Below, one piece after another: positions 5,030 through 64,000 of a DNA stretch of 64,000 nucleotides. The translations under genes were made by a program, and so were the position numbers. Positions within the stretch are counted from its first letter, which is position 1, and each line of letters opens with the position of its first letter. The stretch is from the NCBI GenBank assembly GCA_013416795.1, contig RQSC01000011.1, forward strand, positions 298,721 through 362,720, read 5' to 3'. Source of the stretch: Prasinococcaceae sp. CCMP 1430 (taxonomy: Eukaryota; Plantae; Prasinodermophyta). The notes beneath the pieces are model-generated. The model saw only the letters and a program-made list of their open reading frames with translations. It ran no database searches and was not told the DNA's origin.

Positions 5030-6255
5030 CAGGCACATGCACCCGTACGCTGTGACCCAATAGTCACGCCCGTGCGTTCGCGCGCGCGTGTGAAGGGGGT
5101 GATGTGCACAGCAAGTTAGAGCGGGCCACCCCCGACACATTAGGGTGCCAAAAAACGCGGCGATTCTCGAGCCGCCCACGCGCGCTGCGATGCTCCCGTG
5201 CGGGATGGCACAGCCGAGCGGGCAAAGACGGGCGGAGCGCTCGCCAGATGACGCATGACGCTCTGGGCGCGCTCGCGGTGGCACTGCCGGAGCTCTGGCA
5301 GCACGCTCAAGGTGCTTTGCGCGCTCGCGCGCGCCCGCCGGCCCGCGCGCCAGTGCGGCCGCGCAAAAAATGGCAGCGCGCGCGCGTGGCCGAGCTCTTG
5401 CGGCTGCACAACGCAGATGGGTGCGGCGCGCCTGAAGGGCTGCGGCGCATGCAGGCGCTTTCCCCCCTTCCCCTCGTTTCTCCCCCCGCCCGCCCGCGCG
5501 CGTCCTCACCTCTGCGCCCGTCTTAGCGCGTCCTGCCGCGGCAGGGGTCACAGCGTCGGGGGATGTGCGGTGGGGGGAGGCCCGCGAGGCGCGCGGTGTG
5601 GCCCGCGCCGCCCAATCGGCGCGAAGTTGTAACATGCGCGCGCGCGCCCGCGCGCCGGCGGACCTTCTTGCCCGAAGGATTCGGCAACGAGGCACCCGCG
5701 CGCCGGCGCGAGCGCGCGCCCCCGGCGGCGCCGCGGATCGCGCTCACGGCCGCGTGATCTCTCCGATTTTTCTGGCGCCGAAAATGATTGAAAAGATCAT
5801 CATCGTGCGGCGCATGGCGGGCGTGTGCGAAATGCACGCCGGAATTCCGCGGATTTCACACGTGCGGACGAGGGTTCGTTCTGTGGGCGCATCGTCGACT
5901 CTTTGACGACCGCGGGCAGCTGCGACGCGGTTTGCACGAGGCACGGTTGCGAAGCGCTCCGAAGTGCTCTGTGGGGGACCACTAAGGCGCACTCATTGCG
6001 TGCGCGCACTGAGTGGCGCGGCGCCCCGTTTTGCCGGCGCGTGGCCCCGGCCGGGGGGGCGCGTATGCGCGTCTGGGCGCGCGGCGCGCGCNCACTCCGT
6101 GTGCGTCGCGGCGCGCTCTCGGCAACCGCCTCGCCGTCCTTGCCGCCCACCCCCTACCTCCGGTCGGTGCAGCGACGCGCCGGGGCTCACCGCGGGCGGC
6201 CGCGTCTCTCGGCGCGCGCGCCCCTCGGCACGCGCGTGCGTACCGCCGCGTCGCC

Positions 6256-30612: not shown

Positions 30613-32961
30613 TCACTTGGGCGTGCACACGTTCTTCTTGAATGCGCAGAGCTTCTTGGCGTCGCCCTGCTTGCACTCCTTCTTGTTCTTGGCGGCCTTG
30701 CAGAGCTTCTTGATGGCCTTTTTGGAGAGCTCGGACTGGTCGGTCTTCTTCGACTCCTTCTTCTTGTTCTTGTTCTTCTTCTTCTTGCCGGTGGGCTCGT
30801 CGCCCTCCTCGGGAGGAGGCGACGGGGTGCCGGAGAGCTTGTCGGACTTGCCGGCCTTCTTCTTGTTCTTCTTCTTGTCCTTGCCGGTGGGCGACGACGC
30901 GCCTGGCAGAGTGATGTCGAGGGCTGGCGCTGTTGCGTCGTCGAACAGGCCCTCCGCATCTTCGGCGGACTGGGCGGACGTCGAGGACTCGCCGCCCTCG
31001 AACGCGCCCGGCACGTCCGTCTGGCCGTGGTCGTCACGACCCCAGCAGTAGATCGCGCCGTCGTCCCGGGCGACGCCGCACGTGTGAGCCGCTCCGGCGC
31101 TCACGGACGCCCACGCGCCCACGCCGCTCGGCACGTCCAGCTGGCCGTCGGCGTTGTGCCCCCAGCAGTGCATCGAGCCGTCGTCCTGGGCGACGCCGCA
31201 CGTGTGCCAGTCTCCTGCGCTCACTGAGGACCACGCGCCCGCGCCGCTCGGCGCGTCCGCCTCGCCGGCGGCGTTGCTTCCCCAGCAGTGAATCGCGCCG
31301 TCGGCCTGCGCGACGCCGCACGTGTGAAAGTATCCTGCGCTCACCGAGGACCACGCGCCCACCTCGCTCGGCACGTCCGCCTGGCCGTAGGAGCTCCGTC
31401 CCCAGCAGTGCAGCGCGCCGTCGGCCAGCGCGACGCCGCACGTGTGGAAGGTTCCGGCGCTCACGGAGGACCACGCGCTCACAGTGCTGGGCACGTCGCT
31501 CTGGCCGAAGAGGTTCCACCCCCAGCAGCGGAGCGCGCCGTCGGCCCGCGCGACGCCGCACGTGTGGGCCCCTCCGGCGCTCACGGAGGACCACGCGCGG
31601 ACGGCGCTCGGCACGTCCGCCTGGCCCGCGTAGTTGGACCCCCAGCACTGGAGCGCGCCGTCGGCCCGCGCGACGCCGCACGTGTGGGAGAGTCCGGCGC
31701 TCACGGAGGACCACGCGTTGTCGCGCCCCGCATCGTGCGGCACGTGCACGTAGCCGTCGCCCGGGGTCGTCGCGTCGAGCGGCAGCCGCACGCGCTCCGG
31801 CGTGCACACGCTCGCGGGCCGCGAGTGCCTTCGCGACGAGTCGTCCACAGCGAGGGGCGGCGGAGATTGGGGGTTGTTGGGCGGCGGGCTCGATGGCGAG
31901 CTCGAAGGAAGGCTCGGCGGAGGCGGGCTCTCTGGCGGAGCATTAGCCGGGACGGGGCTGGGCGACGGGCTCGACGGCGGGCTGGCCGCCGGCGGAGGAC
32001 TCGTCGGGCTCGCCACGTCAGATGTGCTCGGCACGTCCGTCTGGCCATTTGTGTTTCTCCCCCAGCAGTAGATCGCGCCGTCGGCCACGCCGCACGTGTG
32101 GTGGATTCCGGCGCTCACGGTGGACCACGCGCCCACGCCGCTGGGCACGTCCGTCTGGCCATAGTCGTTGGTGCCCCAGCAGAGCAACGTGCCGTTGGCC
32201 TGCAAGATGCCGCATGTGTGCCACCCTCCGGCGCTCACGGTGGACCACGCGCCCGCGCCGCTCGGCACGTCGGTCTGGTTCCAGACGTCCTGTCCCCAGC
32301 AGCGCAGCGCGCCGTCCGCCAGCGCGATGCCGCACGTGTGGTAGTTTCCGGCGCTCACGGAGGACCAAGCGCTCACGTCGCTCGGCACGTCCGACTGGTT
32401 GTAGTAGCTGTTGGATCCCCAGCATTGCAGCGCGGAGTCCGCCTGCGCGATGCCGCACGTGTGGTCGTATCCGAGGCTCGCGGAGGACCACGCAGTCACG
32501 TCGCTCGGCATGGCGGTCTGGCCCGCGTAGCTCAATCCCCAGCAGTGGAGCGCGCCGTCCGCCCGCGCGATGCCGCACGTGTGAGTCGCTCCGGCGCTCA
32601 CGGAGGACCACGCGCTCACGTTGCTGGGCACGTCCATCTGGCTGTCGACGTCGCGCCCCCAGCAGTGCATAGCGCCGTCGTCCCGCGCGACGCCGCACGT
32701 GTGCGCGTCTCCTGCGCTCACCGAGGACCACGCGCTCACGTTGCTCGGCACGTCCACTAGCGCGCCGAGGTAGTCTTCGTCGTACATCATGGCATTTTCG
32801 GACGGTGCTTCGCCTCCCCAACAGCGCAGCTCGCCGTCGGCGAGCGAGAGGGCGCACGTGGCCCTGTATCCGGCGCTCAGGGAGTACGATTCGCGGTGCG
32901 AGTCGGGAGCGGCGGCCGCACCGCGCGGTGCGAGCAGCGCCACCGCCGCCCATGCCGCGCT
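30613..32961 (-). CDS. Secreted RCC1/BLIP-II-like repeat protein, copy A: two repeat blocks, Ser/Pro linker, Lys-rich 4-Cys tail; no in-frame ATG before the signal-like segment
   Basis: Repeated WSSVSAGxxHTCG...DG.L.CWG.N..GQ.DVP unit; hydrophobic N-terminus AWAAVALLAPRGAAAA; tail LCKAAKNKKECKQGDAKKLCAFKKNVC; in-frame TAG at 32962-32964. Confidence 0.85.
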   Translation of the reverse strand, partial: SAAWAAVALLAPRGAAAAPDSHRESYSLSAGYRATCALSLADGELRCWGGEAPSENAMMYDEDYLGALVDVPSNVSAWSSVSAGDAHTCGVARDDGAMHCWGRDVDSQMDVPSNVSAWSSVSAGATHTCGIARADGALHCWGLSYAGQTAMPSDVTAWSSASLGYDHTCGIAQADSALQCWGSNSYYNQSDVPSDVSAWSSVSAGNYHTCGIALADGALRCWGQDVWNQTDVPSGAGAWSTVSAGGWHTCGILQANGTLLCWGTNDYGQTDVPSGVGAWSTVSAGIHHTCGVADGAIYCWGRNTNGQTDVPSTSDVASPTSPPPAASPPSSPSPSPVPANAPPESPPPPSLPSSSPSSPPPNNPQSPPPLAVDDSSRRHSRPASVCTPERVRLPLDATTPGDGYVHVPHDAGRDNAWSSVSAGLSHTCGVARADGALQCWGSNYAGQADVPSAVRAWSSVSAGGAHTCGVARADGALRCWGWNLFGQSDVPSTVSAWSSVSAGTFHTCGVALADGALHCWGRSSYGQADVPSEVGAWSSVSAGYFHTCGVAQADGAIHCWGSNAAGEADAPSGAGAWSSVSAGDWHTCGVAQDDGSMHCWGHNADGQLDVPSGVGAWASVSAGAAHTCGVARDDGAIYCWGRDDHGQTDVPGAFEGGESSTSAQSAEDAEGLFDDATAPALDITLPGASSPTGKDKKKNKKKAGKSDKLSGTPSPPPEEGDEPTGKKKKNKNKKKESKKTDQSELSKKAIKKLCKAAKNKKECKQGDAKKLCAFKKNVCTPK
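31761..31830. other. Complemented-but-not-reversed block 1 (may extend to ~31839)
   Basis: Base-by-base complement equals 60775-60844 of paralog B at 70/70 positions (hand alignment); restores SVSAGRSHTCGLAHADGELRCWG in place of RHSRPASVCTPERVRLPLDATTP. Confidence 0.97.
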
Positions 32962-33066
32962 CTATTTCACCGTCAGAGCAATCAGCCAGGTACGCGCGCG
33001 GGGGCGCGTGCAGGGGCGCGCGCGGAGGGCGGGGCCGCCCTTCGCCGCCCTTCTCCGACGGCCGCG

Positions 33067-35302
33067 ATGGGCGCCAAAGAGACCCGCGGCGTCCCGGTCG
33101 AGTACTGCGGCGTGCCCGTGACTTCCTTTCCCGCCCCGGCGCGTGAGTTCCTCGGCGCCTTCGACGCGAATGGCGACGGCGTCATCGACCTGAGCGAGCT
33201 CGAGTCGGCCGCGCGCATGCTCGAACACGCGCGCAAGGGCAGCCTCACGGTTGACATGTTCCCCGAGCGCCTGCAAGACACCGTGCGTGCTCTCGACGAT
33301 GAGGGCGACGGCGTGCTGGAGCTCGACGAGATCACCGAAATGGTCGAGACGTACGCCGCTCTGAAGGAGCAGAACAAGACGGGCGAGATCAACATATCCA
33401 CCCTGCCCAAGGAGATCCAGCCATCGCTGAAGGTGTTTGACGTCGACGGAGATGGAACCGTAGCGCCCATGGAGCTCGCACGCGGCGCCGAGCTGTACAT
33501 CGAGTCCAAGAAGACGGTCAAGAAGCTCACCAGGCTCTCGGTTGCGCTGCTCTTGTTGATGGGCGTCATGCTCGCCGCTATCACGGGCCTCGTCTTCGCC
33601 GTGGTCGAACTGTCCAAAGAGACCAGCACCGGCTCGGGCGGCGTGCAGACCGTGAAGGGCGGGGATGCGCCCGTGGCGACCGCCAAGGTGGAGGAGCGCG
33701 GAAAACTCTTTGATCTGGCAAAGGCCAAGGACAGCACGCTGCTCGCCGTTACCAAGCTCGGCCCCCTCTTTTCGGGGGAGGACAGCCACGCCTTCAGCGT
33801 CACCGGCTACTCGCGCATGGGCGGCGAGGTGCGTTTCTACACCTCGAGCGGCAGCATCGTGTACGTGCGCGAAAACGAGTACCATGTCGCCTCGGCCCAG
33901 GGCGAGACGATCATCCCCGTCACGACCAGGGCCGATGCGAACCAGCGGCGGCGGCTGATGTCGGACACGAGCGAGGAGAGCTTCACCCAGGACGTGGGCG
34001 CGAGCATCGTGGATAACAACAAGCCCACGCCCCCCAAGGAGTGGACCTGCGATCCCGGCTATTACGCCGTGGGCGACGGCTGCGACTGCAACTGCGGCGC
34101 GCCCGACCCGGACTGCCTGACCTGCGAGGACGACGGGACGTACCAGCAAGGTGTGTTTGGCTGCAACAACACTCTGGACCGGTGCGCCGCCGACGCGACG
34201 TGCACATCGGGGCCGCACCACTGCGCGGATGGCAAGACGATGAGCGAGGAGGAGCACAGCGCGTGGCTGTTAACAGCCACCGACAGCTACAGCGACGACT
34301 ACGCAGACAACCACACCGACTACGACTACGACTACGACTACGACGACTACGGCTGCGGCTACGGCTACCACGAGGACTTTGGCTACGGCTACGGCTGCCA
34401 CAACTACGACTACGACGACCCGACGCGCCGCCACCCTACGACTCCTTCTACCCGCCGTCACCGGATGCGCCCCCACCGTTCTACTCGCCGCCGTCACCGG
34501 ATGTGCCCTGGCCGAACGCGCCCCCACCGAACGCGCCGCCACCGGACGCGCCCCCACCGGACTACTCCTATGACTACTCCTACGCGCCCCCACCGGACGC
34601 GCCCCCACCGGACGCGCCCCCACCGGACGCGCCCCCACCGGACGCGCCGCCACCGGACGCGCCTCCACCGAACGCGCCACCACCGTACGCGCCGCCGCCG
34701 AACGGTGACGACTACGAGGACGATCCTCCCATCGAGATCCTCCGGACGTTGCCGGAAGAAGAGCTTGACTACGCGGAGACGGAATTCGCTGTTGACCTTT
34801 TCGACAGAAGTTATGGGTACGATGGGCAGACTGCTATGATGGATATTGGAGAAGTGTATCACCCCCTGTGGCTCGTGTGGCGCTATTTTGCCAAGGTGCG
34901 GCGCGCAGACGACCGCTTAGGCCGGCGCAAGGGGGGGCGACGCGCGCCGACTTCAAGTGGGCGGCCTTTTCGAGAGCCATCGCCAGAGACCGCTTTGACA
35001 TCCGCAGGCACTCCGACATCGACTTCGCGGCGACGGATGACGACGGCCACCTCTATCGCGAGGAGGGATTCGATGAAATGTTCCCCAAGTCACGGGAATG
35101 GAGGGAATTCGCGGACCTCTTCTATGGCGCGGATTACGATTACAGTGGTACTCTGCCGTCGCTCGAGTGCAAGCTGGACGACGTGGGCGTCGTGACAGGT
35201 GCTGTGTACGCCGATGCCGAGGTTTCCTTTGTCATGGATGGCGACGAGACGTCAGCATTGCGTTTCCGATCGTTTTCCACAACGATCGAAAGGAACAACT
35301 GA
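33067..35302 (+). CDS. Type II membrane protein: three EF-hands, one TM, Cys-rich module, Tyr/Asp and Pro-rich repeats; frameshift near 34420; intron 34896-34957
   Basis: EF loops DANGDGVIDLSE, DDEGDGVLELDE, DVDGDGTVAPME; TM LSVALLLLMGVMLAAITGLVFAVV; WTCDPGYYAVGDGCDCNCGAPDPDC; (YD)n; PDAPPP repeats continue only in the shifted frame. Confidence 0.75.
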
Positions 35303-36181
35303 AGCCAAGACTATCGAGCCGGCACCGCTGGCCGCGTTGCTGACCGTCGCTGAGCGCCTCGACAAAACGTAGGCACTCCCCAGTTGAACTTCGCCCACGA
35401 GGACGGCGAGTTGCAAGGTGCGGTCACGCATCTTTGAGGGCGACAAGCTCAACAACCTTCGAGCCACCTGGGGTTCGAGCACGCAAATGTCAGACGCTGC
35501 ACGATTGCGACCACAGCAGATAGAGCTATCGACGTCGCATCGCCCACTCCTAGTTTCCTGCGCCCGCCATCCCAATGTGTATGAGACATGGCGTGTGTGG
35601 ATCCAGTCGCTCGCCCCGCCTGCTCCGCCCCGCGCGCGCGGGGTGGCGGGCACGCCGCCGGCGCCGTTCCCCGGCAGCCGCGTACCAGGACTGTACTGTG
35701 GTCCAGCTAGACTCTCGAGGCAGCCGGCCGACAGCGCCGGGTCGCCAGGGTTCTCTAGCTAGCTAGAGACTACTCCTACAGTCGTCGTACTGTAGAACGC
35801 AGCGTGACGCCGTGTCTGGCCGCACCAACGGGCGGTGAGACCGGGGATGACATCCTCTGACCGAGGCAGGAAGGCGGGGTCACCCGGGTGAGCGCGAAGG
35901 ACAGTACATGTACATACAGTAGTCACTAGTGCAGTACTAGTACTACTGTACTGTAACTGCCCTCGAGCTGTACGAGCGAGCGTGTGTGGGGTGAGGGGGG
36001 TGGGTGGGGGCGGTAGCAGGAGCCACTCGAGGGCGCCCCAGCAGGCGCCCACCGCCGCGCCGCCTTGACCCCTCCCTGTTTCCCACGCGCGTGCCCCCTG
36101 TGGTGGTGTGTGTTGGGGGGGGGGGGGAGTGCGGCGCGGCGTGGGCGCGCGCTTTGCCGCCGCGGCGTCCCGAAGGCGACG

Positions 36182-38318
36182 ATGTCCATCTGGGAGGGCG
36201 TGGCGCCGCGTGCCGGGCTGCGCGAGCCGCTGCTCGCGCCGTCCGACGCGCACCGCCGCGCTGCTGGCGCTCGGTGCGCGCGAGGCCGCCTGGGTGGGCG
36301 CCGGCGTCGCGGCCCTGCTTGTGAGGCTGCCCTTCTCGCTGTCGATGCCGCTGTGGACCGCGCGTGCCGTGGACGAGCTCTATGGCTCCGACGAAGCGCG
36401 TGACATGGCGGCGGTGCGGCGCACGCTGCTGTACATGGCCGCCGCGGGCACCATCGATGCCGCGCTCGACTTTTGGTGTGTGTTCCTCTTCGGCTATGCG
36501 CAGCAGCGCCTCGTGCGGCAGCTGCGGCTCGACACGATGGCGGCCATCCTGCGGCAGGAGGTGGCGTATTTCGACGCAACGACCAGCGGTGAGCTGCTGA
36601 GCCGGCTGACGGCGGACTGCGAGGCGATGGCGGGCGACCTCACCAACGTGCTGCGCTCGGTGGTGGAGGCCGTTGTGCGCATCGGCTGGATTGCCGCGTA
36701 CATGCTCTACTCGTCGCCGCGGTTGGGCGGGGTTGCGTGCTGCGTGGTGCCGCTCACCGCCGCAGTGACGCGCTGCTACGCGCGCTGGCTGCATGCCAAC
36801 GCCACGCGCGTGCAGGCGGCGCTCGCGCGCGCCAACGCCTCCGCTGCCGAGGCGCTCGCCGGCCTGCGGACGGTGCTCGCCTTCGCCGCGGAGCGCGCCG
36901 AGCTCGCGCGCTTCGGCGCGGCCGTCGAGGAGCACCACTGGCTCAACGTGCGTCAGCTGGTCATAACGGGCGCGTACTACGCCGTGGCCGCCACCCTGCT
37001 CTCTAACACCGCCGTGGCGGTGGCGCTGCTAGCATACGGCGCCGTGCTTGTCGCGGAAGGCTCCATCTCCCCCGCCACGCTGCTGGGATTCATGCTGTAC
37101 CAGGCGCAGCTGCAGGAGTATTGGAACAACCTTCTGAACGCGCTCACCGGCTTGGTGCGCTCGTCGGGCGCGGGCGCCAAGGTTTTCGAGCTGCTCGGTA
37201 GGCAGCCCAAGTGCGTGCGCCTCGACGGGGGCGGGCTCGGCGACGCGTGTGGTTGGCTCGGCGACGGACTACGCGACAACACGGCGCCGGGGCGGACTGG
37301 TGGAGGCGGACGCGTGGGTGCTGACGCCGATGCGAGCACGCGCGCCAAGGCACGGGCGCATTTGCTGGGCGTCGACGTGCGCGACGTGTCCTTCGCGTAC
37401 CCCACGCGGCCATCCGTGCGCGTGCTCGACGGCGTGGGCCTGCGCGCGGAGGCCGGCGAGACGGTGGCGCTGTGCGGGGCGAGCGGCAGCGGCAAGAGCA
37501 CGCTTTTTCACATGCTTCAGGGGTTCTACGAGCCCGACGCGGGAGGCGTGTTCCTCTTGGGCGATGTGGTTGGTGGCGAGGCCGCTGTGTGTGCCATCCC
37601 ACACCGTGCTCTGCATCGGCTGGTGGCGCTGGTTGGCCAGGAGCCGGTGCTCTTTTCCGGGTCCGTGGAGTATAACATCCTGTACGGCGCGCTCGCCGAC
37701 CTGGTGGCGGAGCGTGAAGTAGCCGACGTCGCGCGCCCGCGCATGCGCGCTCGCGAGCGCACGCGAGCGGGGCTCGCGGGGGCGTTTGGGCTGCGCGGGC
37801 GCGTAGGCGCGGACTCGGATGTGAGGGCGAGCGGCTGGGAGGACCTCGTCGGCTCGCCCGCGGCCCTGGTAGACCTGCGCGCGCGCGCGCGCGCCGCTGC
37901 GGCCCTCGCGAACGCCGCGGGCTTCATCGATGCGCTGCCCGAGGGCTACGCTACGCAGGTGGGCGAGGGTGGCGCGGCGCTGAGCGGCGGGCAGAAGCAA
38001 CGTGTGGCCATCGCGCGGGCGCTGCTCCGCGACCCGGCGCTGCTGCTGCTCGACGAGGCCACCAGCGCACTCGACTCGGAGAGCGAGGCGGCCGTGCAGG
38101 AGGCGCTCGAGTCCGCTGCCGCCGGCCGCACCACTATGGTCATCGCGCACCGCCTGTCGACCATCCGCCGCGCGGACGCCATCCACGTGCTGCGCGCGGG
38201 CCGCGTCGTGCAGAGCGGCACGCACGCCGCGCTTCGCGCCGACGCGCGCGGCGCGTACGCGGCGCTCGCGCACGCGCAGGAGCTGCGCGACGACGCGGGG
38301 ACAGATGAGGACTCGTGA
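36182..38318 (+). CDS. ABCB (TAP-like) half-transporter; likely start ATG 36182 is out of frame with the main ORF
   Basis: TMD followed by Walker A GASGSGKS, Q-loop VGQEP, LSGGQKQRVAIARAL, LLLDEATSALD, IAHRLST. Confidence 0.92.
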
Positions 38319-38493
38319 CGCGCGGCACGGACAGGGCGTCGCGCACCACCGCGAGGGACGCCACCCCAAGCCACCCTCCGCCACCCTCAGCCCCGTTGCG
38401 CGCGAGCCAGCTCCAGCCTGCTCCAGCCATGCCTTGCCGAGCTTCACATCCCGGTCGGGAAGCACCTTGTAATAATTTTTAATGTATACAAAA

Positions 38494-58520: not shown

Positions 58521-58825
58521 CCCCGGGCGGCCCTGCAATGCAGATGGGCGCGGTCCGGGGTTGGACAGGCACCGGAGGCGCCGGCGGAAGCTGCCTAGCG
58601 TCGCTGAAGTCGGCTGGTGCGCGCGCTGTGGGGGGCGGCAGGTGCTGCCCGGACTGGTGGCACCTGGGAGGCGCGGCGCGTGGCTGCGGGCGGCAGTTGG
58701 ATGTCGTGTCGCGTCGAGTTGTGATGACTGGGAAGAGAAGAAGATTGACTGAATTCGTGTCAAAATGCGTGAGGGCAGCACATGAGGCGCGTGCGTCGAT
58801 CGCCTCTCGGCGTCTTCCCTCGCTT

Positions 58826-58969
58826 TCACTTGGGCGCGCACGCGTTCTTCTTGAACGTGCAGAGCGTCTTGGCGTCGCCCTGCTTGCACTCCTTCTTGTT
58901 CTTGGCGGCCTTGCACAGCTTCCTGACGGCCTTTTTGGAGAGCTCGGACTCGTCGGTCTTCTTCGACTT
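58826..58969 (-). pseudogene. Orphan third copy of the Lys-rich 4-Cys tail of the RCC1-repeat genes
   Basis: KSKKTDESELSKKAVRKLCKAAKNKKECKQGDAKTLCTFKKNACAPK* with no RCC1 repeats upstream. Confidence 0.75.
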
Positions 58970-59599: not shown

Positions 59600-62161
59600 T
59601 CACCTGGGCCTGCACGCGTTGTTCTTGAATGTGCAGAGCTTCTTGGCGTCGCCCTGCTTGCACTCCTTCTTGTTCCTGGCGGCCTTGCACAGCTTCTTGA
59701 TGGCCTTTGTGGAGAGCTCGGACTCGTCGGTCTTCTTCGACTTCTCCTTCTTCTTGTTCTTCTTCTTCTTGCCGGTGGGCTCCTCGTCCTCTTCGGGAGG
59801 AGGCGACGGCGAGCCGGAGGGCTTGGACTTGCCGGCCAAGAAGAACAAGAAGAAGAACGAGAAAAAGAACAGGAACGGCCCGGGCGACGACGCGCCTGGC
59901 AGAGTGATGTCGAGGGCCGGCGCTGTTGCGTCGTCGAACAGGCCATCCGCATCTTCGGCGGACTGGGCGGACGTCGAGGACTCGCTGCCCTCGAACCGCG
60001 GGCCGTGCAGGCAGACCGGCACCAGCAGTGCTGGGGTCGTCTAGATCGCGCCGTCCTCCCGGGCGACGCCGCACGTGTGAGCCGCTCCGGCGCTCACGGA
60101 GGACCACGCACCCGCGCCGCTCGGCACGTCCGTCTGGCCGTCGGCGTCGCGCCCCCAACAGCGCATCGCGCCGTCGTCCCGGCTGACGCCGCACGTGTGC
60201 CAGTCCCCTGCGCTCACCGAGGACCACGCGCCCGCGCCGCTCGGCGCGTCCGCCTGGCCGTCGTCGTTGGACCCCCAGCAGTGAATCGCGCCGTCGGCCT
60301 GCGCGACGCCGCACGTGTGAAAGTATCCTGCGCTCACCGAGGACCACGCGCCCACGCCGCTCGGCACCTCCGTCTTGCCAAAGCCGCTGCGTCCCCAGCA
60401 GTGCAGCGCGCCGTCGGCCAGCGCGACGCCGCAGGTGTGGAAGGTTCCGGCGCTCACGGAGGACCAAGAGGACCACGCGCTCACAGTGCTGGGCACGTCG
60501 CTCTGGCCGAAGAGATTCCACCCCCAGCAGCGGAGCGCGCCGTCGGCCCGCGCGACGCCGCACGTGTGGGCCCCTCCGGCGCTCACGGAGGACCACGCGC
60601 GGACGGCGCTCGGCACGTCCGCCTGGCCCGCGTAGTTGGACCCCCAGCACTGGAGCGCGCCGTCGGCCCGCGCGACGCCGCACGTGTGGGAGAGTCCGGC
60701 GCTCACGGAGGACCAGGTGTTGTCGCGCCCCGCATCGTGCGGCACGTGAACGTAGCCGTCGTGGCCCCAGCAGAGGCCCCAGCAGCGCAGCTCGCCGTCG
60801 GCGTGCGCGAGGCCGCACGTGTGCGAGCGCCCGGCGCTCACGGAGTGCGGTGTGGCATCCACAACGAGGGGCGGCGGAGAGTTCGGGTTGTTGGGCGGCG
60901 GGTTTTGAAGAGGCGGGCTCGACGGAGGCGGGCTCGACGGAGGCGGGCTCGACGGCGGCGGGCTCGACGGAGGCGGGCTCGACGGCGGCGGGCTCGACGG
61001 CGGGCTGGCCGCCGGCGGAGGACTCGTCGGCGGGCTCGGCGGCAGCCAGCTCGGCACGTCCGTCTGGCCGTATTCGCCGTCGCCCCAGCAGTAAATCGCG
61101 CCGTCGTCCCGGGAGACGCCGCACGTGAAGTACGACCCGACGCTCACGGAGGACCACGCGCTCACGTTGCTCGGCACGTCCGTCTGGCCGTTGCCATTGA
61201 GTCCCCAGCAGAGCAGCGCGCCGTCGGCCTGCGCGATGCCGCACGTGTGCCATTCCCTGGTGCTTACCGAGGACCACGCACTCACAACGACCGGCACGTC
61301 CGTCTGGCCCTCGCCGTTAGATCCCCAGCAGTGCAGCGCGCCGTCGTCCAGCGCGATGCCGCACGTGTGGTACATTCCGGCGCTCACGGACGACCACGCG
61401 CTCACGTCACTCGGCACGTCCGCCTGGCCGTAGTCGTCGTAGTCAGAGGGGGATCCCCAGCAGCGCATCGCGCCGTCAGCCTGCGCGATGCCGCAGGTGT
61501 GGTACATTCCGGTGCTCACGGACGACCACGCGCCCACGCCGCTCGGCACGTCCGTCTGCCCGTCGGTGTTCGATCCCAAGCAGTGCAGCGCGCCGTCGGC
61601 CTGCGCGATGCCGCACGAGTGGAACAGAGATGGGCTCACGGAGGACCACGCGCCCACGCCGCTCGGCACGACCCCTTCGCCGTACATGTTATACCTCCAG
61701 CAGTACAGCGCAGAGTCCGCCCGCGCGATGCCGCACGTGGCGTAGGCGCCGGCGCTGACGGAGGACCACGCGCTCACATTGCTCGGCATCGGAATGTGCT
61801 CGTACTCGGAGACGTAGTAGTAGGTGGAGTCGGACGGTTCAATTTCTGGCCAGCAGCGCAACTCCCCGTCGGCGTGCGCGAGGCCACACGCGTGGAACGA
61901 TCCGACGCTCACGGAGTACGGCGGCTCTGAGTCCGAGTCCGAGGCGGCGGTTAGCTCTGAGTCCGAGTCCGAGGCGGCGGTTAGCTCTGAGCCCGAGTCC
62001 GAGGCGGCGGTTAGCTCTGAGTCCGAGTCCGAGGCGGCGGTTAGCTCTGAGTCCGAGTCCGAGGCGGCGGCGGCGCCGTTGAGGCCCGGTGCGAGCGCCG
62101 CCGCGCATGTCGCGAGGAGCAGCAGCTTGTTGGTTGTTGCGAGGGGGGGTGGAGGGGGCAT
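59600..62161 (-). CDS. Secreted RCC1/BLIP-II-like repeat protein, copy B; premature TAG at 60041-60043 is produced by complemented block 2
   Basis: MPPPPPLATTNKLLLLATCAAALA signal; SD repeats; RCC1-like units; SPPP linker; tail 59600-60022 is in the same frame as the main ORF. Confidence 0.88.
59997..60041. other. Complemented-but-not-reversed block 2
   Basis: Base-by-base complement of 31004-31048 in copy A at 45/45 positions, with matching colinear flanks; restores YCWGRDDHGQTDVPGA. Confidence 0.97.
61925..62070 (-). repeat. 30-nt tandem repeat (about 5 units) encoding ASDSDSELTA
   Basis: GAGTCCGAGTCCGAGGCGGCGGTTAGCTCT repeated on the + strand. Confidence 0.92.
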
Positions 62162-62564
62162 GTTTTTGTTTCGCAGGACGCGACGAGGCCCTGGTCGGTT
62201 GGGCGGAGGATGAGGCGTGAGAGGGGGGGGAGGGCGGAGTGGGAAGGCGGTCAGGGGCAGCTCGACCGTGCAAGCTCTACGAGCGGCAGCGCTGCCTGAA
62301 ACCGAGCAGGCCGTAGGCGGCCTTGTACGATATGAATGCGGACACACACTAGCAAAAGCCAGCAAAAACATGTACACGAAAACTGATGTCACACTTGCCT
62401 CGAGCACATAGCCAGACCATGCGCGGCCGGCGCACCGCCCGCGACCCGCCTGCTGTAGGCGGCGAGGCGGGGGGAGGGACTCGCTGGCTCATCGCGAGCG
62501 CCACACGCGCTCTCGGTCGCGCCCTCGCGGCCGGGACGCGCGCGCGCACAGGGGCGGGGGGGCG

Positions 62565-62840
62565 ATGGCGCCAGCGGGGGGCGCTGCAACCCCCGCCGCG
62601 ACCCCGAAAGCGATCGCGATCGCGACCACGCCAGCGCCCGCGACGACGCCCGCCCCCGGCCTGGTGGACGCTCGTGCGGCGCAGCCGGGGGCTCCTCGGC
62701 TCGCGATTGGGGCCGCCGTCGTGGAGCTCAAGCTGTGGCTACACCGCTTCGTCAACGTGGACCTCTTCGAGCAAGGATGGTACGCCTTCCGCATCTCGGC
62801 GAGCGCGGATGCAGCGAATCACGCCACCGGTGGCAGCGGC
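62565..62840 (+). pseudogene. FAM135-like (putative lipase family) N-terminal fragment truncated at the single N (62841)
   Basis: VELKLWLHRFVNVDLFEQGWYAFRIS matches the FAM135 N-terminal motif (F.N.DLFQ.G.Y.I); nothing recognisable of the gene follows the N. Confidence 0.7.
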
Positions 62841-62841
62841 N

Positions 62842-64000
62842 GGCGGGCTCGGAGGCGGGCTCGAGGGGGTCAGATCAAAGACGTACGCGCTGCCGCTATC
62901 GTCGCCGCCGTCGTTGTCCTCCCTATCAGCGCCCACCAGCGCGTAGTAGCCCGAGAGCGCCACGCTGACGCCGAAGTAGTCATCCGCCGCGGCGTCGCTT
63001 GCCACCAGCTTGGCGTGCTGCGACCACGACGTCCCCGACCGCAGGAAGACGTACGCGCTGCCGCTGTCGTCGCCGCCGACGGCGTCGTAAGGAACGCCCA
63101 CCAGCGCGTAGTCGCCCGAGAGTGCCACGCTTGTGCCGAAGTTGTCATACTCCGCGCCGTCGCTGGCCAACAGCTTGGCCTGCTGCGACCACGAGGTCCC
63201 CGACCGCACGAAGACGTACGCGCTGCCGCTGGCGGAGCCGTCAAAAGGGGCGCCAACCAGCGCGTAGTCGCTAGAGAGCGCCACGCTGGTGCCGAACTCG
63301 TCATTCGCCGCGCCATCGCTGGCCACCAGCTTGGCCTGCTGCAACCACGACGTCCCATTGCGAACGAACACGTACGCGCTGCCGCTGTTGGAGCCACTGT
63401 CGTCGTCGTGGGGAGCGCCCACCAGCGCGTAGTCGCCCGAGAGCGCCACGCTGACGCCAAAGCGGTCGTCGTACGTGCCGTCGTCGGCCATAAGCTTGGC
63501 CTGCTGCGACCACGACGTCCCCGAACGCACGAACACGTACGCGCTGACAGGGTTGCCGTCGTTCCACCAAGCGCCAACCAGCGCGTAGTCGCCCGAGAGC
63601 GCCACGCTGGCGCCGAAGTTGTCAGATCGGCGCCGCAGCGACCGTTGGTCGAACCGGACGACGCTGGTGCTGCAGGGGCTGGGCACGAACACGTACGCGC
63701 TGCCGCTCTCGTCGCCGCCGTCGTCGTCATATAGAGCGCCCACCAGCGCGTGGTCGCCCGAGAGCGCCACGCTCCAGCCGAAGGCGTCACCCGCCGCGGC
63801 GTCGCTGGCCACCAGCTTGGCCTGCTGGGACCACGACGTCCCATTGCGCACGAACACGTACGCGCTGCCGCTGTAGGGGCCGCCGTCCTCGTCTGAATAA
63901 GCGCCCACCAGCGCGTAGTCGCCCGAGAGCGCCACGCTGGTGCCAAAGTAGTCAGCGTCCGTGGCGTCGTTGGCCACCAGCTTGAACTGGTTCGGCGGTC
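62842..64000 (-). CDS. FG-GAP repeat (7-blade propeller-like) extracellular protein, partial at both ends
   Basis: Seven KL.A.D....D.FG.SVALSGDYALVGA...GSAYVF units, then SSPPPSP up to the N; frame is open to the window end. Confidence 0.9.
63627..63682. other. Complemented-but-not-reversed block 3
   Basis: PSPCSTSVVRFDQRSLRRR replaces the repeat consensus; its complement reads RSGTSWSQQAKLVASDAAA and nearly matches the neighbouring repeat at ~62987-63040. Confidence 0.95.

Follow-up and report, generated by a model that had tools for sequence, protein, structure and literature searches.

The window analysed here is a stretch of 64,000 nucleotides from the draft genome of Prasinococcaceae sp. 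CCMP 1430 (contig RQSC01000011.1). It has a G+C content of ~69% and is interrupted by seven runs of N (150, 589, 121 and 178 nt, plus three single Ns), which marks it as a scaffolded draft. The single Ns, at positions 6092, 8683 and 62841, lie in otherwise continuous sequence, one of them inside an FG-GAP repeat gene, and resemble remnants of a consensus or gap-closing step. The genes of the window are eukaryotic, among them those for a condensin Cnd1 subunit, a CBP20-like RRM protein and an ABCB half-transporter whose closest named homologues are only 43-46% identical. A short-period tandem repeat occupies positions 34450-34710 and encodes RPHRT repeats in the frame of a long open reading frame (ORF 32896-34839) and PPPDA in another (ORF 34041-35195); the long ORF is probably out of frame there.

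The features described below lie in repeat-protein genes on the reverse strand (Table 1). Copy A of an RCC1-like gene consists of two blocks of ~40-residue RCC1_2 repeats with a Pro/Ser-rich linker between them, followed by a Lys-rich, Cys-containing C-terminal tail; the Pfam family RCC1_2 (PF13540) matches it in 11 stretches with E=7e-78 and 255 bits, compared with a cutoff of 22. Its paralogue, copy B, lies 29 kb away and is 83% identical overall, with exact shared stretches of 200 nt, and sequence of this type is the kind on which short-read assemblers break. The linker of copy B contains a 15-nt tandem repeat (60905-61000, PPPSS units) that is expanded compared with copy A. The Lys/Cys-rich C-terminal tail occurs a third time, on the reverse strand at 58808-58968 (SKKTDESELSKKAVRKLCKAAKNKKECKQGDAKTLCTFKKNACAPK, then a stop), immediately downstream of copy B and with no RCC1 repeats ahead of it. 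The long ORF of copy B (60041-62407) is ended by a stop at 60041-60043, and the C-terminal part of the gene continues in the same frame to a further stop at 59600-59602. The 146 in-frame codons downstream of the premature stop are conserved; thus, the sequence past the stop shows no decay, which is the opposite of the trace that an old inactivating mutation would leave.

Table 1. Positions of the complemented blocks and of their host genes in the window.
Feature	Positions	Strand	Description
RCC1-like repeat gene, copy A	30613..32943	-	776-aa ORF
Mirror block iii (main finding)	31761..31830	.	70 nt within RCC1-like copy A; true sequence complemented in place
RCC1-like copy B	59600..62407	-	Pfam RCC1_2, 9 stretches, E=2e-70
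Mirror block i	59838..59880	.	43 nt, Lys-rich tail of copy B, read as FLFFFSFFFLFFL
Mirror block ii	59997..60041	.	45 nt, copy B; complement of copy A 31004-31048 at 45/45 positions
Normal counterpart of block iii in copy B	60775..60844	-	encodes SVSAGRSHTCGLAHADGELRCWG
FG-GAP_2 repeat gene, host of block iv	62739..63977	-	Pfam PF14312, 7 stretches, E=3e-126; extends past the window end
Mirror block iv	63628..63682	.	55 nt, FG-GAP repeat gene, read as PSPCSTSVVRFDQRSLRR; left edge ±~3 nt

In-place complemented blocks in the repeat genes

Within copy A, one RCC1 repeat is replaced over 70 nt (block iii) by sequence that translates as RHSRPASVCTPERVRLPLDATTP, which corresponds to residues 372-394 of the ORF plus one further base; copy B encodes a normal repeat at the equivalent place. 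In a script comparison, complementing every base of block iii without reversing the order reproduced the copy B counterpart at 70/70 positions, with no extension of the match on either side (0 bases each). The other ungapped modes of comparison gave 0/70 identities for the direct sequence, 24/70 for the reverse complement and 22/70 for reversal only. After complementing, block iii also matched ~20 other RCC1 repeat units at 79-92% in blastn. A preliminary description of this DNA had claimed a 70-nt in-place complement of the paralogue; its coordinates, counts and peptides all proved correct.

Repeat arrays are known to be prone to inversions and foldback template switches between repeat units, and the blocks resemble the outcome of such events in that a short stretch within a repeat gene gives way to its own strand-related version. 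Inversion and foldback, however, yield the reverse complement, whereas the order of the bases is kept in the blocks. Because the reverse-complement identity of block iii is only 24/70, with a best local score of 19 compared with 70 for the plain complement, an ordinary inversion or template-switch rearrangement is excluded. The same value, together with the 22/70 for reversal only, indicates that block iii is neither an inversion nor a mirror palindrome.

The window was also transformed by each of the three non-identity pairwise base swaps, and the products were compared with the untransformed window by blastn (E<=1e-4), with plus/plus hits recorded for the complement. The complemented window returned 58 plus/plus hits, all from four loci, and the complement-class matches spanned 70, 55, 45 and 43 nt. 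By contrast, the control swaps A<->C/G<->T and A<->G/C<->T gave no exact match of at least 20 nt and no blastn hit within the window, so that the swap classes stand at 4:0:0. According to this sensitive scan, the number of in-place complemented blocks in the window is exactly four; each lies inside a repeat-protein gene, and together they fall within about 6 kb of such genes. The formal relation of two loci on one strand is that of the complement and reverse repeat classes of REPuter, and short repeats of both classes are routinely listed by such repeat finders; it could thus be asked whether a G+C-rich or internally symmetric sequence had produced the matches by chance. The REPuter classes, however, are short and without known biological meaning, whereas the blocks span 43-70 nt, reach 100% identity and are collinear with a paralogue and an orthologue. 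A chance origin is excluded by the absence of hits from the control swaps next to 58 hits from the complement. Moreover, the 70/70 match of block iii is collinear with the paralogue alignment, the expected count of such 70-mers is effectively zero, and internal symmetry of the block is not found.

All four blocks keep the length and the reading frame of their genes, with no insertion, deletion or duplication at the junctions. Complementing them back restores the repeat consensus, with identities to sister repeats of 79-100%. In the alignment of copies A and B, blocks i-iii fall in collinear positions, and the abnormal version is carried by copy A at block iii and by copy B at blocks i and ii. 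The complement of block i is 12 nt longer than the corresponding sequence of copy A, which indicates that copy B's own diverged sequence was complemented and that no piece of copy A was pasted in. The last base of block ii converts a Tyr codon into the premature stop of copy B. The possibility that each block represents a maximal exact repeat, common to copies A and B, that had been collapsed was considered and rejected: it fits block iii (flanking identical runs of 0 and 0) but fails for block ii (10 and 14).

Block iv, in the FG-GAP repeat gene, is 94.5% identical over 55 nt to the complement of a sister repeat (62986-63040) and 92-96% identical to those of three others, and it reads WSQQAKLVASDAAA once complemented. 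A homologue that is 64% identical aligns through block iv without gaps; it shares only 2 of 20 residues within the block and shows strong identity on both sides. This alignment was the only use made of a representative search with the FG-GAP protein, which was swamped by long repeat proteins; the search yielded no near-identical sequence for block iv, the best identity being 69%. Two further scans were aimed at mirrored blocks in unique DNA. A k-mer scan, based on the likelihood of forward compared with reversed sequence, was too weak, with the known blocks falling among the lowest 0.1-14% of windows. A scan of codons against complemented codons did pick up block iv, but low-complexity and out-of-frame stretches dominated its output.

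Matching contigs from a close relative

With the ABC transporter as query, a protein search led to a Tara Oceans metagenome scaffold (L001) that encodes a protein 99% identical to it; the scaffold itself aligns with window positions 34632-38448 at a nucleotide identity of 92-98%. This match shows that a very close relative exists in public assemblies. The 3.8 kb of unique DNA that could be compared with L001 contains no complement-only patch. The Tara relative carries ~560 nt of extra sequence (L001:297-857) relative to window positions 34925-34930, including a run of 36 C, and ~108 nt further at L001 2192-2299. In both sequences, the ATPase domain of the transporter contains an in-frame insertion of ~55 residues between the Walker A region and the signature motif (37692-37899) when compared with solved ABCB structures. 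The gene call of L001 reads through this insertion, which is either a stop-free unspliced intron or a lineage-specific loop. We considered it as a further mirrored block and rejected it, as its complement is nonsense and the insertion is conserved in L001.

For the orthologue of copy A, a 251-residue piece centred on block iii served as query and matched a protein (P0211) with 97% identity over the matched part. P0211 is encoded by L002 (ENA ERZ842040, NODE_184922), a SPAdes metagenome contig of 1285 bp with a coverage of 2.3. The flanks of the block site identify L002 as the orthologue of copy A rather than of copy B, since 206/210 and 247/250 positions agree, including the positions and the Pro/Ser linker that are specific to copy A. 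L002 and the window each contain 71 nt between the shared anchors. The last 70 of these in L002 are the exact complement of block iii, with a direct identity of 0/70, and P0211 reads DDSSR-SVSAGRSHTCGLAHADGELRCWG-HDGYVHVP at this place, a normal RCC1 repeat. The base immediately left of the block (31760) is C in the window, T in L002 and A in copy B; this three-way difference may be an ordinary polymorphism or a part of the junction. Next to the normal counterpart of block iii, copy B carries an in-frame 12-nt tandem duplication (60762-60786, CWG-LCWG) that is absent from both copy A and L002. Farther out, to the left of the equivalent of window position 31545, L002 diverges after the second repeat into unrelated coding-like sequence (L002:563-1285, VVVDGEDEEHILNISSDTDTT...). 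The relative may have its genes arranged differently here, or the contig, at a coverage of 2.3x, may be chimeric.

At the site of block ii, which is also normal in copy A, the normal sequence YCWGRDDHGQTDVPG is carried by another contig of that sample (L003, protein P0275). The tail encoded by L003 finds its best match, at 95.7%, in the third tail copy downstream of copy B. The complemented state is thus missing from independent assemblies at two of the four sites, in a relative that is ~98-99% identical and represents another strain. On these comparisons, the complemented state is private to the present sequence, L002 and L003 coming from a relative that differs from it by ~1-2%.

No carrier protein of the mirrored block iii peptide was found among 5.8 billion clusters in searches that draw their words from the peptide, and a W/S-degenerate pattern that fits either version of the junctions found nothing in metagenome contigs. 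A protein-based scan of metagenome contigs returned only distant relatives of 24-52% identity.

Origin of the blocks

Taken together, these results leave little doubt that the blocks are a sequence-construction artefact private to this draft assembly, in which a reverse complement was only half completed, and not a biological structure. Short pieces of 43-70 nt in repeat-rich genes would have entered the scaffold after one half of the operation. A piece held in the opposite orientation might have been reversed without being complemented, or a correctly oriented piece might have been complemented without being reversed; either half-operation would produce an in-place complement of unchanged length. 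The comparison at block iii bears the signature expected of an operation on a character string: 71 nt stand against 71 nt, 70/70 agree after complementing, the junctions are free of scars and the frame is kept. The window is also a gapped draft with repeats that are hard to resolve, and all four blocks lie in genes of RCC1_2 or FG-GAP_2 repeats. The distance from the blocks to the nearest remaining run of N is 0.8-3.3 kb, and none is adjacent to one. Candidate stages for the half-operation would be assembly, repeat resolution, gap closing, scaffolding, patching or file handling after assembly. We infer that software or data handling was the cause, with repeat resolution, gap closing, patching or file handling as the stage presumably responsible.

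The preliminary description had favoured a software error in a repeat as the most likely origin. This reading gains support from the normal repeat in L002, which has the same length and place and is framed by A-specific flanks, and further support from the normal sequence of L003 at block ii. In several respects, the blocks behave like the mis-joins of short-read draft assembly and gap closing, with a gapped scaffold, near-identical tandem and paralogous repeats, a false premature stop and absence from independent assemblies. They differ from described assembly errors, which comprise collapses, expansions, wrong fills and inversions, in being length-preserving complements in place. We found no published description of a complement-only bug in an assembler or gap closer in the literature.

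A more specific form of artefact would be an error in decoding colour-space (SOLiD-type) reads. In two-base encoding, complementation leaves every internal dinucleotide colour unchanged, and two erroneous colours at the junctions would therefore complement everything between them. Translated into colour code, the window and L002 indeed differ only at the two junctions of block iii, apart from one adjacent base difference, and the blocks, at 43-70 nt, are of a size similar to that of short reads. Although the junction colours are compatible with such errors, decoding errors should also generate the other two swap classes and mixed switches, whereas only one of the three classes was seen. If the classes were equally likely, a ratio of 4:0:0 would have a probability of about (1/3)^4, even before a clean return to the normal sequence is required. 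De novo assembly of a eukaryote with 70% G+C in colour space would also be unusual, as far as we know. We consider this specific route very improbable.

Still less probable, with barely any chance of being correct, is a real DNA change private to the strain, in which segments of the repeats were copied parallel to their template by some unknown mechanism. The complemented bases are present in the sequence as given, and each of the four blocks is situated in a tandem-repeat gene, a setting in which slippage during replication and template switching occur often. However, it is established that no known enzyme makes parallel copies; to our knowledge, every polymerase, recombination or template-switch route yields antiparallel, reverse-complement products. 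The relative is normal at two sites, and one of the blocks interrupts with a stop a gene that is otherwise intact. In addition, four independent events within 6 kb, all perfectly length-preserving and without any later divergence, would be unlike rearrangements.

Consequences for draft assemblies and for the repeat genes

The value of the finding lies in a quality-control warning on draft assemblies. An aligner that considers just the forward and reverse-complement orientations does not see blocks complemented in place. Each of them turns 15-23 residues into nonsense, and false pseudogenes may result, as in copy B. Where repeats exist, such blocks can be detected by comparing an assembly with a complement-only version of itself in a simple plus/plus blastn; blocks in unique DNA, with no paralogue for comparison, would escape notice.

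If the blocks were nevertheless present in the DNA of the strain, a stretch of 40-70 nt of repeat would have been copied parallel to its template. Parallel copying is unknown for any polymerase or recombination system, and a basic rule of nucleic-acid copying would be overturned. Almost certainly, however, the feature does not represent real biology, and the genes concerned, from a marine eukaryote rich in G+C, encode ordinary repeat proteins of the RCC1-like and FG-GAP types.
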